Shown: positions 1,065-54,557 of the stretch, piece by piece
Layout of the letters: the number at the start of each line of letters is the position of its first letter
How positions within the stretch are numbered: the stretch's first letter is position 1
Origin: Piromyces finnis finn
Lineage: Eukaryota > Fungi > Neocallimastigomycota
Direction of reading: 5' to 3'
DNA length: 64,000 nt
NCBI GenBank assembly: GCA_002104945.1
Contig: MCFH01000083.1
Location: 104,387 to 168,386, forward strand
Program-made: the position numbers and the translations under genes
The notes under the pieces: model-generated
The model's input: only the letters and a program-made list of their open reading frames with translations
The model's database searches: none
What the model was told of the DNA's origin: nothing

Positions 1065-1073
1065 TAAAATGAT
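1065..1073 (+). promoter_or_regulatory. TAAAATGAT candidate early-promoter motif (representative copy; see findings for the others)
   Basis: The same 9-mer, or TAAATTGAT, lies in sense orientation ~45-165 bp upstream of 11 element genes. Confidence 0.6.
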
Positions 1074-1173
1074 ATTTATACAAGTTTAAAATAATAATAC
1101 TAAAATTTTCTGTATTATAATTGTTAATGTATTGTTAGTAAAATACAATTTTTTATTAGATAAACTTTAAAAA

Positions 1174-3372
1174 ATGGATATCATTCAATTAATTAATAAT
1201 TTATTAAGTAATAACAAATGCCTATCTAATGAATATGAAATAATAATAAATAATAAAAAATTTTCATTTTTTGAAGGAATCAATATAATTGACTGTAATA
1301 AACTTTCCAAAGATCAATATGCTGTTAAATGTAAAGATAATATAAAAGTTGACGCAAATTATTCATCATTTTTTTCTCTTTTTAACATATTGGAAAGAAA
1401 ATCAAAAGAGAAAATCTTCAAATATAATTTCGATTTAAAGGATACAACAAAAACAAGCTTTTATATTCCGGTCAATATTTCTATACATACTTTTAAAGAA
1501 GTGTATAATAAATTAATAAAATTAGATTTGCCGAATACTTGCCAATATGTCATTGGTTTTATTGGAGGATTACATTATTATCATTACTTTAATAATGATT
1601 GCTACACCGGATCATATAATTATAATCAAAATTTAATTAAAATGGATAGGGTTAAAGATATTGAAGATTTAGATAATTATATAATTATAAGATGTTGTCA
1701 TGATTGTATAAAAATCACCCATGATAAAATTGTGTTTTCCGAAAGAGATACGTATGACAATATTATTTGTAGAATATTGCCATGTTTTAATTACACAAAT
1801 GAACAAATACTAATTAGATTTACACCTTGTGATGCTTCTTTTATCTATCCAATATCTATAAACTTTCAATTATTTGATCTAATGCTCTATGAAAATGGTT
1901 TTTATCCTTATATATATGCCAATGAAAGCGATAGTTTAATAAAGTGCCAAGAAAAATTAGTGTATACAATGAATATTCTTAATAAATCCATTAACATGTT
2001 GCTTTACAACAAATACAAGCAATTTACAGAAACTATCCAATTTCAAGATTTAGAGTGGTATATGTACTCGGCTGTTAAAAAAGTGTTGAAATACCTATAT
2101 TTATTTTATATTGACTTCCATATACGTTATTATCAAAGAAATGAACCTTTCAGTACTCCAATTAAAATAAATTACAATAGATTATTTGGAAAATATTATA
2201 CTAGATATTTTAATAATAAAGATAAAGTATTGCCGGTGATTGCTGATAAGGATTACTGCGTCGAAAATAATATTCCGTATGTTCAATGGAATAGCAATTA
2301 CTATAGAGCTCCGGAAAATTCGGGATATAAAATAATTCTTTCAACAAATAAAAAATATACAGATAATAACGGAATTCCTAAATGTGTTAAAGTCATAAGA
2401 AAGTATAAGGAAAAAAGGGAAGTTGTCTACTTTAACATAACCCATGAACTAAACGAACATTGTAAAGGCCAATTCCCTTCAAATTTATTTATATCCTATG
2501 GCTTTGAATTACTGCATTTATACCGTGTATATTTCGATATCCCGGAAATATCTAGTAAATTTACCACTTGTCCTAAATGCAACACCTACATTAGCATTCC
2601 AAGTCAAAAAGACTTGGTAAATACCATAAAAGACTTACTTCATCACAACCAATTAAAAATACTAAATAAAAATTACAGTTTCAATGATGTTAACATACTT
2701 TCTTTTTCTATTGATAACGATATGAATGTATATCCGTATTGCGTTTTTAACCACGTTTACAGTTTTAATCCTTTCATTCCTTTTTTAATAGTTATATTAA
2801 ACACTTCTAAATTATATACATTTCCTAATTATCGATTTGAATTTGTGGTAGGCCCAAATGACAATTGGTTCAATTTTAATGATGATCTTGTACAGGCTAT
2901 ATTTTCTATGTATAAAAAAAACTCTATTTTAATTATGGATAGTACTAAATTAAATAAATGCATTAAGCAATACGTCTTAGATAATGACACTGCAACCACT
3001 ACTATTTTAATAGCAGAAAAAGAATATCCAAATGAAAATTTTTATCTATGGAGATCTATTTATTCAGAAGTAATACCTAAGATACCAATAATAAAGGATG
3101 CCGAAGAATTTCACAATACCCTGCCATCATTTTCATTTCTATGTAAAACGATTAAAAGTATATCTGCTTTTCATTACAATGCATTGGATGAAAATAATGA
3201 AAAATTCATGGTTTATGGTGTATGGGAAAATGAAATTTATTACCCATGTAAAGCATCATTGGAGATAGTAAAACCGGATAGCATTAATAAACCTTACTTA
3301 TTAATAAAAAGAAATTTAGATGGAACTGTTTATTCATTTACTAAAGATAGTTCTAATTTTATAGTTTTTTAA
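1174..3372 (+). CDS. Probable viral early transcription factor large subunit (VETF-L, poxvirus A7-like)
   Basis: Segment NRLFGKYYTRYF..LPVI..NYYRAP..GYKIIL..NGIPKC resembles the conserved LF..Y.R.C..QP.I..YY.CP..YPGL..N..P.C block of NCLDV VETF-L; context with RNAP, capping enzyme and D6/D11 helicase. Confidence 0.6.
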   Translation: MDIIQLINNLLSNNKCLSNEYEIIINNKKFSFFEGINIIDCNKLSKDQYAVKCKDNIKVDANYSSFFSLFNILERKSKEKIFKYNFDLKDTTKTSFYIPVNISIHTFKEVYNKLIKLDLPNTCQYVIGFIGGLHYYHYFNNDCYTGSYNYNQNLIKMDRVKDIEDLDNYIIIRCCHDCIKITHDKIVFSERDTYDNIICRILPCFNYTNEQILIRFTPCDASFIYPISINFQLFDLMLYENGFYPYIYANESDSLIKCQEKLVYTMNILNKSINMLLYNKYKQFTETIQFQDLEWYMYSAVKKVLKYLYLFYIDFHIRYYQRNEPFSTPIKINYNRLFGKYYTRYFNNKDKVLPVIADKDYCVENNIPYVQWNSNYYRAPENSGYKIILSTNKKYTDNNGIPKCVKVIRKYKEKREVVYFNITHELNEHCKGQFPSNLFISYGFELLHLYRVYFDIPEISSKFTTCPKCNTYISIPSQKDLVNTIKDLLHHNQLKILNKNYSFNDVNILSFSIDNDMNVYPYCVFNHVYSFNPFIPFLIVILNTSKLYTFPNYRFEFVVGPNDNWFNFNDDLVQAIFSMYKKNSILIMDSTKLNKCIKQYVLDNDTATTTILIAEKEYPNENFYLWRSIYSEVIPKIPIIKDAEEFHNTLPSFSFLCKTIKSISAFHYNALDENNEKFMVYGVWENEIYYPCKASLEIVKPDSINKPYLLIKRNLDGTVYSFTKDSSNFIVF

Positions 3373-3803
3373 TTTAATATATGAAAAAAAAATTGTAGTT
3401 ACAAAAAATTTTTAAATTAGAATTTCCTATTTATTTTTAAAATTTATATACTTTGTTTTTTTTAAATGATATAAATAATATATATATATTTTATTTTATT
3501 TTATTTTATTATATAAATAGTTATAAACATTAAATTTTGTCTTCAAAAGAATATTAAAAATAAATAAATGTATAAATAAATGATATAATAATTAATTACA
3601 AATAATTAATAATTAAATATACATCTACCTATCTTTCTAAATATATATGTATATATAATAAAATATAATTAATTAATTAAATAAATTGAATTTTGAATTT
3701 AATATAAAATGATAATTTATTTATCTGAATAATAATTAATCTATTATAAATATATAGTGTAAATTATATTGTAAATATTTTTTTAAATATTTTATAAATC
3801 AAT

Positions 3804-52984: not shown

Positions 52985-53004
<20 letters not shown>
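52985..53004. repeat. (TG)n microsatellite
   Basis: Read directly. Confidence 0.9.
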
Positions 53005-53181
53005 AATTATAAATAAATTTTTAAAAAAAATATAATGTTCATATTTAATAAATTTTAATTATTTCGCAATACTAAAATTGCTTATCTACTAAAATATTTT
53101 AATATTTGTATATAGAATTATGTAAATATAACAATTTATAATTTAAACAAAAATCTAAAACATTACAAATCATATTCTTCT

Positions 53182-54021
53182 TTATAATCTTTCAGTACTA
53201 CTACGAAGAGAATTAGACGAAATATTAATATCAACAAAATAAGCTTTGCAAGTAAAATTTACCATTGGTACCCCATTAATCATTCGTTCATTAACTAACA
53301 CATAACAAACTTTAATAATAGGATAAATATTACCATGAATATAGCAAAAAGTGTCTTTGGAAAGAAGATCAGCAACTTCTTTTGAATAAACATCACCGCA
53401 ATACACATTAGTTCCTATTTTGAACTTTTCTTTAATTGGATCCTTGAAATAACGGAAATTAATATATTCAGCATCTTTACTTTTATTAATTATCCCAGTG
53501 TACGTCCAATTTTGAGTGTAAGTTACCTTATTTTTAGTAAGTAAGTTTGAGATAGGTGAAGTCATATCCATATTCTTTATATAGTTTGAAATTAAATATT
53601 TTATTCTTTCATCAACTAATCGAACATGTTCAATAAATTTATTGGTTGAGGCAGTTTCATTGTTAGATATTTTATGGAAGAAATTGTCTTGAATATAGTT
53701 ATTTTTATTAAGGTGATAATGTGACATTGGAATGGATAAAGCAGGTAAATCCGATAAAGATAAATCTGAGGTGTCATTTACAGCGCCGATAACCACATTA
53801 CTACAGTTATTATAGCATTTAACAACAAATCTGTACATTTTATTATTTTTAGGTAAGGGGACAACTTCTTTAAAATTTATGGTATTAACCATAGTTTGAA
53901 ATACAATGTCTGAATAACATGACGCTAAAACCCTTTTGTAATAATCCAAACGAGGATTACTCGATTCATTATTCGACTTAACTAATTTCGTAAGTTGTTC
54001 CGAAGATGTTGAATTATTCAT
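53182..54021 (-). CDS. Hypothetical protein, 279 aa; candidate viral OB-fold single-stranded DNA-binding protein
   Basis: Size, beta-rich pattern and the helix FIEHVRLVDERIKYLI resemble NCLDV/T7-gp2.5-like SSBs; the function is a weak inference. Confidence 0.5.
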   Translation of the reverse strand: MNNSTSSEQLTKLVKSNNESSNPRLDYYKRVLASCYSDIVFQTMVNTINFKEVVPLPKNNKMYRFVVKCYNNCSNVVIGAVNDTSDLSLSDLPALSIPMSHYHLNKNNYIQDNFFHKISNNETASTNKFIEHVRLVDERIKYLISNYIKNMDMTSPISNLLTKNKVTYTQNWTYTGIINKSKDAEYINFRYFKDPIKEKFKIGTNVYCGDVYSKEVADLLSKDTFCYIHGNIYPIIKVCYVLVNERMINGVPMVNFTCKAYFVDINISSNSLRSSTERL

Positions 54022-54557
54022 ACTATTATTTAATATTCTATCTATTTTATTATATTATATTATATAATATTATATAATATTATATTATATTATATTTATT
54101 AATATTATATTGTATTTATTAATATTATATAAATATAGTTAAAATTTAAATCAATTTATGAAATAATGGAAAGGATTTATAATACAATATTAAAAGAAAA
54201 TTTTATTTATCATTTTATATATTTTATATCAAACTTTGAATTAAATTTTAAAAACAAAGCATATTACAATTAACATATCGCTAATTTATAATTAATTAAT
54301 TAATTAATTAATTTATTAAAAGTATTTACAATTAAATAATTCTTTAATATAGTATTAAGTTAAAAAATAGGTAATTTATAATATATAAATTATTATATTA
54401 TAAATTTATAGTAAATATATTCTATGTAATAAAATATAAAATAGGTTATATTTTAAAGTTAATGTTTTTTTTTCTTTATTTATTAAATTATGAAATTCAT
54501 ATATAAATATATAGATATTTTTAATAAATTATAAATTATATTTAATGAGGATTTTTT

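Follow-up and report, generated by a model that had tools for sequence, protein, structure and literature searches.

The locus and its genes

We analysed the final 64 kb of a 168-kb contig of the anaerobic gut fungus Piromyces finnis (MCFH01000083.1:104387-168386, forward strand; 64,000 nucleotides (nt), hereafter the window), in which a nine-letter motif, TAAAWTGAT (W being A or T), recurs upstream of genes. Judged from its sequence, the window is a tandem endogenous, giant-virus-like element of the "fundsalphavirus" type (PMC7017919). The motif is probably the core promoter of this element of anaerobic gut fungi, set in sense orientation before almost every transcription unit. The genes, other features and motif sites are listed in Table 1.

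The fundsalphavirus gene set was detected by Pfam among the open reading frames (ORFs) of the window: family B DNA polymerase (polB), D5, D6/D11 SNF2 helicase, S-adenosylmethionine (SAM) methyltransferase, Rpb2, and the N- and C-terminal parts of Rpb1. RPB5, which was reported for fundsalphavirus elements (PMC7017919), was not identified in the window. The DNA to the left of the window (L007:1-8826) carries the unit's preceding genes in unchanged order (239 amino acids (aa), 282 aa, helicase, 279 aa, TFIIS), and positions 1-3619 are repeated at 54130-57735; the element thus forms a head-to-tail array, its unit being about 54.1 kb long, and the array ends near 57735. The helicase copy in the unit left of the window is 94.6% identical only. 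A head-to-tail array is the arrangement expected from an integrated concatemer or circular form.

The spacers of the window total 9.9 kb and are 89% A+T, and the coding sequence amounts to about 37 kb. A nested retrotransposon lies inside the convergent spacer between D5 and Rpb2, interrupts neither gene and is outside the element proper; its GC content is 29.5%, compared with about 22% for the window overall. No capsid or packaging ATPase domains were detected by Pfam among the window ORFs, which is weak evidence because several large ORFs have no assignment.

Table 1. Genes, other features and motif sites of the window, with positions counted from its first nucleotide
Feature	Position	Strand	Remarks
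82-aa TFIIS-type zinc-ribbon gene	434..682	-	PF01096, E 6.7e-10; copy 2 at 54558-54806
732-aa gene	1174..3372	+	TBP-like predicted N-terminal fold; copy 2 at 55295-57493
Rpb1-C (RNA polymerase largest subunit, C-terminal part)	3804..5183	+	separate gene; Pfam; orthologues intact
polB (family B DNA polymerase)	5805..9095	-	PF00136, E 1.5e-66; also a PF03104 domain
D5-like primase-helicase	11253..13040	+	PF08706; orthologues in relatives
Ty3/gypsy long terminal repeat (LTR) retrotransposon	13243..19464	+	nested, apparently complete; 612-bp LTRs 99.8% identical; single 1530-aa gag-pol ORF
Rpb2 (RNA polymerase second-largest subunit)	19785..23645	-	two ORFs, one interruption
932-aa protein gene	24011..26809	+	C-terminal methyltransferase domain (Pfam); candidate cap methyltransferase
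Rpb1-N (RNA polymerase largest subunit, N-terminal part)	27289..29451	+	three ORFs, two frame changes
Chitin-binding CBM18 gene	31443..32090	+	orthologue in L013 and L015
1275-aa gene	32531..36358	-	syntenic in L013-L015
481-aa gene	36653..38098	+	confident all-alpha model
2207-aa gene	38310..44933	+	weak lectin-like stretch; syntenic in L013 and L014
SNF2/DEAD (D6/D11-like) helicase	49132..52572	+	best solved relative poxvirus NPH-I, E 1.2e-18
Start of next tandem unit	54130..57735	+	99.4% identical to 1-3619
Host flank	57736..64000		13.5% GC over 57736-63079; 137-aa ORF; subtilase/CBM18 gene at contig end
TAAAATGAT	945..953	-	271 nt before 82-aa TFIIS zinc-ribbon gene; back to back with 1065 site; copy 2 at 55069-55077
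TAAAATGAT	1065..1073	+	109 nt before ATG of 732-aa gene; copy 2 at 55186-55194
TAAAATGAT	3705..3713	+	99 nt before Rpb1-C; further 8-mer match at 3682-3690
Variant TATAATTGAT	9156..9165	-	before polB; same variant in L011 and L001
TAAAATGAT	9651..9659	-	52 nt before 146-aa gene
Variant with ACAAATGAT core	9884..9895	+	before 194-aa gene; conserved in L011, L001 and L005
Variant TAAAATGAA	11174..11182	+	79 nt before D5; same variant in L011; AAAAATGAT in L001
TAAAATGAT	23688..23696	-	63 nt before Rpb2
TAAATTGAT	27186..27194	+	103 nt before Rpb1-N
TAAATTGAT	31282..31290	+	161 nt before CBM18 gene
TAAAATGAT	36407..36415	-	57 nt before 1275-aa gene
Weak variant site	36554-36565		before 481-aa gene; exact motif at L013 orthologue
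TAAAATGAT	38247..38255	+	63 nt before 2207-aa gene
TAAAATGAT	45391..45399	+	136 nt before 239-aa gene
TAAAATGAT	47931..47939	-	174 nt before 282-aa gene
TAAAATGAT	48968..48976	+	164 nt before helicase ATG; exact match missed by the original prediction
Variant with one extra T	49064	+	before helicase
TAAATTGAT at 54150 and TAAAATGAT at 54209	54150..54217	-	137 and 196 nt before 279-aa gene; copies at 21-29 and 80-88

Position and strand of the motif

The window contains 22 exact matches to the motif, every one in non-coding DNA. On rescanning, all coordinates given in the original prediction held, exact sites and three variants alike, and further matches were found at 48968(+), 945(-), 55069(-) and 54209(-), together with duplicates at 21(-), 80(-) and 55186(+). 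Four matches are unconnected with element genes: two lie in the retrotransposon LTRs, at 13703(-) and 19313(-), antisense to the retrotransposon, which has no sense-oriented motif, and two lie in the host flank, at 59955(-) and 60554(+), far from any gene start. The distance from motif to ATG had been put at about 45-165 nt; we measured a somewhat wider range, 52-199 nt, with 271 nt for the TFIIS gene.

The number of matches in the window as a whole was at the level of chance (22 observed, 18.6 +/- 4.3 in dinucleotide shuffles). The whole-window 9-mer count is a poor test here, the signal being positional. When each spacer was divided by strand, the strands reading toward gene starts (test) held 14 matches, against 1.97 +/- 1.38 expected and a maximum of seven in 2000 dinucleotide shuffles. 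The strands reading toward gene ends or the retrotransposon (control) held none (1.25 expected), and there were no exact 9-mers on either strand of the coding sequence. The exact 9-mer was present in 13 of the 20 upstream regions of the window. The sense orientation that had been claimed for the motif was found as a strict strand bias, and the excess over shuffled background on the upstream sense strands was roughly seven-fold.

These counts bear on the idea that extreme A+T content produced the motif by chance, or that it is a repeat that travelled with duplicated spacers. Such an origin would agree with the whole-window count and with the fact that four of the 22 matches are copies, and so not independent, because positions 1-3619 recur in the 3.6-kb duplication. 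We give it almost no credence, since the seven-fold excess was measured against shuffles of the same spacers and was confined to upstream sense strands, with none on the control strands. The flanks of the matches are not conserved, and the motif was rediscovered independently in relatives, at conserved orthologous positions (see below).

The arrangement of the sites was also compared with that expected of a 3'-end or termination signal of the preceding gene, or of a site used by proteins of replication, recombination or packaging. Where genes stand head to tail, the motif does follow one gene while preceding the next. Divergent spacers, where no 3' ends occur, nevertheless have motifs back to back on both strands (945-/1065+ and 47931-/48968+), all convergent spacers lack it, and its orientation is always that of the downstream gene. 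Downstream of stop codons, no k-mer was enriched to a degree comparable with the motif, and hairpins were no more frequent than expected (mean z -0.07). A role at 3' ends, or in replication, recombination or packaging, is thus highly improbable.

Inside genes, occurrences of the 8-mer were compared with codon-order shuffles, random null models made per ORF. There were two antisense occurrences against 7.0 expected (1.6% of shuffles had two or fewer) and two in sense against 5.0 expected (11%). The rarity of the motif within coding sequence is marginally significant and may reflect avoidance of internal promoter-like sites.

Shape of the motif

The motif was recovered without prior knowledge of its letters. 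When k-mers of six to nine letters were ranked by how well they separated the 300-nt upstream sense strands (n = 19) from the control strands (n = 21), the top separator was always a sub-word of TAAAATGAT; for example, TAAAATGA was present in 12 of 19 and 0 of 21. Unseeded de novo expectation maximisation (EM) on the upstream regions of relatives alone (32 regions) gave the same pattern. With the EM matrix from the relatives, 17 of the 19 window upstream regions scored above 7.2 bits, which was the best score among the 21 control strands (Mann-Whitney p = 1.4e-6). Overall, 17 of 19 window genes, core and accessory alike, have the motif or a conserved variant upstream, and no second promoter class was found in the element.

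Column counts over 44 instances showed that T1, A2, A3, A4, T6, G7 and A8 are invariant and that position 5 is A in 36 instances and T in eight. T is preferred immediately before and after these positions. The core can be written T-x-TAAA(A/T)TGA-T, 11 nt with a single invariant G, set in an 89% A+T spacer. Between -14 and +55 around the motif nothing else is conserved, and the flanks are uninformative outside positions -1 to 9, so that the matches are not copies of a dispersed repeat.

The composition of the motif allows for a post-transcriptional role, as a 5' untranslated region (UTR) element or as the start of a short upstream ORF, with ATG in an A-rich, Kozak-like context. AAAATG is present in 36 of the 44 instances, and the motif lies within the plausible range of 5' UTR lengths. 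The remaining eight instances have TTG in place of ATG and are otherwise identical, letters are conserved on both sides of the ATG, the TGA-T overlap included, and the frames opened by the motif ATGs close within a few codons. Moreover, the early promoter of Aureococcus anophagefferens virus (AaV) contains an ATG too (PMC5917014). We consider a post-transcriptional role very unlikely.

Conservation in related elements

Homologues of the 732-aa and 481-aa proteins were found only in genomes of Neocallimastigomycota (Piromyces, Neocallimastix, Anaeromyces and Orpinomyces) and in metagenome and run assemblies. Gene order is conserved across these relatives, and this extends to the accessory genes (CBM18, 1275 aa, 481 aa and 2207 aa). 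The motif recurs before orthologous genes in four related lineages, with about 44-86% identity in the 732-aa protein. In L001, a compact relative in which all called genes are intact (71-72% identity in the 732-aa protein), the upstream strands held 10 matches against 0.49 expected, and nine of the 11 upstream regions had the motif, at 24-105 nt before the ATG. The corresponding numbers were five against 1.33 for L004 (48% identity), three against 1.12 for L005 (43-44% identity) and three against 0.70 for L013, which carries accessory genes and to which the 732-aa identity is not applicable. The control strands of the four together had no matches (about 3.3 expected). In L011, a second P. finnis copy, the motif precedes six of the eight genes tested.

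At the window genes that lack an exact match (194 aa, D5 and polB), variants stand where the orthologues have them too: upstream of the 194-aa gene the ACAAATGAT core, in four elements; upstream of D5 TAAAATGAA or AAAAATGAT; and upstream of polB TATAATTGAT, in three elements. In sum, the motif was found upstream of orthologues in four lineages, whereas in a fifth it was degenerate or undetectable.

Every called gene is intact in L001-L003 (Logan run assemblies) and in L005/L006 and L013-L015 (JGI/ENA metagenomes). The spacers of L001-L003, at about 50-380 nt, are much shorter than those of the window. The 732-aa protein (P0003) was listed in 35 collection blocks, most of them on contigs of 20-50 kb, the longest being 42.5 kb. 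These relatives may be free elements or pieces of fungal genomes. Scans of IMG/VR with the methyltransferase and the 481-aa protein gave no relatives of the element, and a scan of JGI metagenome contigs with the 732-aa alignment gave one short locus, which lacks the motif.

Accessory genes

The original prediction had taken the fungal-looking cargo genes to be part of the element rather than interspersed host genes. This is supported independently by synteny: the CBM18, 1275-aa, 481-aa and 2207-aa genes belong to the element, because they are syntenic in metagenomic relatives and the motif is found there too.

The model of the 481-aa protein (predicted local distance difference test (pLDDT) 84.5, predicted template modelling score (pTM) 0.86) had no match among solved structures (best E 0.58). 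Being a confident all-alpha model without such a match, it was ruled out as a capsid protein candidate. Anaeromyces robustus has three tandem paralogues of the 481-aa gene (L016:6770-14944). Residues ~1115-1231 of the 2207-aa protein weakly match entries for a LysM domain protein, putidacin L1 and pyocin L1 (E 0.004-0.1); this stretch can be read as lectin-like, and with the CBM18 gene it gives a hint of accessory functions in carbohydrate binding. The 1275-, 282- and 279-aa proteins gave no usable result in sequence searches of the PDB.

Transcription genes and the candidate motif reader

The element encodes cognate machinery for transcription, namely a multisubunit RNA polymerase (Rpb1 N and C parts, Rpb2, and the TFIIS-type zinc ribbon). 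In the window the Rpb1-N and Rpb1-C parts are 23 kb apart. Rpb1-N is a single gene of 717-748 aa in relatives, and Rpb2 is a single 1074-aa gene in L001, with the two window pieces together making up about the full length of intact relatives; for both broken genes, each ORF was searched on its own. The remaining window genes compared with orthologues are of similar length in relatives.

The 732-aa protein had been labelled 'VETF-L', after the large subunit of the poxvirus early transcription factor. That subunit (VETF-l) has a TATA-binding protein (TBP)-like domain and is paired with a TFIIB-like partner (PMC12917281), and the invariant G of the promoter has been proposed as a VETF contact (PMC6211774). 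At the level of sequence the label found no support; at the level of fold it gained a match of moderate confidence. Foldseek with an AlphaFold model built from ten homologues matched TBPs (E 5e-4 to 1e-3) and chain K of 7AMV (7amv_K, E 8.6e-4, TM-score 0.22), which is a 708-residue chain of the poxvirus early pre-initiation complex. The 732-aa protein may thus be a TBP-fold initiation factor, possibly VETF-l-like, at the fold level only.

Comparison with known promoter systems

Motifs of related form are known from several systems. The early motif of AaV contains AAAAATGAT, within which lies AAAAATGA, and mimivirus and Cafeteria roenbergensis virus (CroV) use AAAATTGA (PMC5917014). The early core of poxviruses (vaccinia), the UCE, is A-rich, followed by any base and TGA (PMC5294985, PMC6211774), and VETF-l/VETF-s read it together with the viral polymerase (PMC5294985, PMC6211774, PMC12917281). 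In the cytoplasmic linear virus-like elements (VLEs) of yeast, pGKL1/2, each ORF is preceded at 20-40 nt by ATNTGA, the upstream conserved sequence or UCS (PMC6211774). The distance from core to transcription start is about 12 nt in vaccinia and 11 nt in pGKL (PMC6211774). In CroV the early motif is present at 35% of genes (PMC5294985), and in AaV at 47.5% of those expressed in the first 6 h after infection (PMC5917014).

The likeness to early promoters of nucleocytoplasmic large DNA viruses (NCLDVs), on which the original prediction was built, was borne out: the published AaV, mimivirus/CroV and poxvirus cores share AAA-N-TGA or an A-rich N-TGA. By comparison of letters, the motif is nearest to the Mimiviridae forms among the published promoters made of an A-run, a variable base and TGA. 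It shares with them the A-run, one variable A/T position, the invariant TGA and a sense, upstream place in A+T-rich spacers, and the window forms AAAATGAT and AAATTGAT are nearly identical in their letters to the octamers of AaV and of mimivirus/CroV. Unlike in the Mimiviridae, the motif stands before about 90% of genes, with no temporal class or late motif apparent, and the element is integrated, about 54 kb long and has a fungal host.

With poxviruses the element has in common the A-rich core followed by any base and TGA, the invariant G, a D6/D11-family helicase, a multisubunit polymerase, and a 732-aa protein of a length similar to that of the 708-residue chain, its model matching both TBP and the pre-initiation-complex chain. 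It differs in that the 732-aa protein has no sequence similarity to VETF-l, the helicase is nearest NPH-I, no Rap94-like factor was identified in the element, and intermediate and late classes are not evident.

The label "early" did not stand. The motif or a variant is found before 17 of 19 genes, polB, D5 and accessory genes included, and since it precedes almost all genes, without a second class, "early" is unsupported. Because the motif is near-universal, the system is more like the single-class promoter of the yeast VLEs than a temporally restricted early class. Both have a single short N-TGA motif before nearly every ORF, accessory genes included, and both motifs are element-specific in an extremely A+T-rich genome; the VLE motif is read by an element-encoded polymerase. 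The differences are considerable, however. The hexamer here is AAWTGA, compared with ATNTGA, so that one fixed position differs, and the distance to the ATG is 24-105 nt in L001 and 52-271 nt in the window, compared with 20-40 nt. The element has a polB with PF00136 and PF03104 and an NCLDV-like split Rpb1 plus Rpb2, whereas the VLEs have a compact two-subunit non-canonical polymerase. Finally, its units of about 54 kb stand in tandem in a nuclear contig, whereas the VLEs are small linear cytoplasmic plasmids.

The fundsalphavirus elements of Gong, Zhang and Han (2020) resemble the element studied here in having Piromyces finnis among their hosts, the same gene set, retrotransposons nearby, and some genes with stops or frameshifts (PMC7017919). 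That study described gene content and phylogeny and did not mention promoters; it reported that polB of the group clusters with Pithovirus, not with Mimiviridae (PMC7017919). What the present analysis adds is the motif, the arrangement in tandem, the synteny of the accessory genes and the existence of compact relatives with intact genes in metagenomes.

Host control and interpretation

As a control, we searched 300 nt upstream of 20 annotated P. finnis host genes on the sense strand. None had the 8-mer or the 9-mer, compared with 13 of 19 upstream regions of the element with the motif (Fisher p = 3.3e-6). On both strands together, the density of the 9-mer was 0.20/kb in 68.9 kb of host-like DNA and about 1.4/kb in the element spacers.

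This control bears directly on the alternative that the motif is a site for a host factor or a core-promoter element of host RNA polymerase II, the integrated element being transcribed in the nucleus and its genes adapted to host promoters. The copies studied are integrated in nuclear contigs, the polymerase genes of the window copy are broken, and the host spacers are extremely A+T-rich too, so that a similar-looking host element is conceivable. We nevertheless consider a host site unlikely. Besides the contrast between host and element upstream regions, compact relatives from metagenomes and run assemblies, whose genes are intact, have the motif to the same degree, its letters match the early cores of viruses equipped with a polymerase of their own (PMC5917014, PMC5294985, PMC6211774), and both a polymerase and a protein predicted to fold like TBP are encoded by the element itself.

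The motif is most likely the element's own promoter because it is conserved in relatives, absent from the 20 host upstream regions sampled and matches the early cores of giant viruses. The analysis shows the motif, its rules of strand and position, its conservation and the presence of the polymerase genes and of the TBP-like predicted fold, from which we infer promoter activity, the identity of the reading protein and the position of the transcription start. In the mechanism we propose, an element-encoded initiation factor would recognise the motif, as the poxvirus VETF does its A-rich/TGA core. The candidate for this factor is the 732-aa protein with its TBP-like fold, perhaps acting with the D6/D11-like helicase. 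The factor would then recruit the element's own multisubunit RNA polymerase (split Rpb1, Rpb2 and the TFIIS-like subunit), by which the motif would be read. If the motif is a promoter, transcripts are predicted to begin a short, constant distance downstream of it.

Several observations weigh against this interpretation. The host sample is small (20 genes at four loci). The distance from motif to ATG is variable in the window, and no initiator-like element at a fixed downstream spacing was found among the 44 instances. The 932-aa methyltransferase gene has no good site (best 5.0 bits with the EM matrix), and in the window copy the 481-aa and 205-aa genes have no more than weak variant sites. 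In the lineage L020-L023 (51% identity in the 732-aa protein) there is no exact site; degenerate variants stand before the 732-like and 87-aa genes, and none is evident upstream of Rpb1-N. This lineage may be an older, decayed integration or one with a drifted promoter; its 732-like and Rpb1-N genes lie in gene-poor DNA.

The machinery raises points of the same kind. With Rpb1-N and Rpb2 broken, the window copy would depend on other copies for its own transcription. Among solved structures the best relative of the helicase is NPH-I, a member of the same D6/D11 family, and not the small VETF subunit. Pfam searches with 10 family members, phmmer, and hmmsearch of a 10-sequence profile against the PDB gave no sequence-level family match for the 732-aa protein. 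Its model has a mean pLDDT of 60.6, with the first ~330 residues mostly at 70-90, and the TM-scores of its fold matches are low.

A wider reading is that the elements form a living, not fossil, family of NCLDV-derived, self-transcribing gut-fungus elements of about 35-55 kb, with one universal UCS-like promoter and maybe no capsid. We hold this to be possible, though doubtful. It is left open by the intact, short-spacer relatives in many run assemblies and gut metagenomes, with the motif before nine of 11 genes, by the head-to-tail array, and by the lack of a capsid domain by Pfam. In its organisation such a family would stand between the giant viruses, with their temporal classes of promoter, and the yeast VLEs, with a single class.

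In practical terms, the motif is a simple sequence marker that separates the genes of virus-like elements from host genes in the A+T-rich genomes of anaerobic fungi; by this marker, the chitin-binding gene and the very large genes are genes of the element. As a probable promoter, it would place a fungal element group with a reportedly Pithovirus-like polB beside the Mimiviridae, poxviruses and yeast linear plasmids, in which the A-rich/N-TGA type is already known. Such an extension is in keeping with the ancestral promoter of NCLDVs proposed under the name "MEGA-box" (PMC5294985) and with the proposed link between NCLDVs and yeast VLEs (PMC6211774).

Other features of the locus

Short tandem repeats were observed at four places: 4537-4692 (6-bp period, in Rpb1-C), 10638-10788 (40-bp period, in the spacer after the 194-aa gene), 31511-31711 (78-bp period, in the CBM18 gene) and 50042-50385 (39-bp period, in the helicase). 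The subtilase gene at 63080-63988 in the host flank, which may belong to the host or be a further accessory gene of such elements, has a C-terminal CBM18 domain, and similar subtilase/CBM18 proteins are encoded on metagenome contigs of up to 25 kb.

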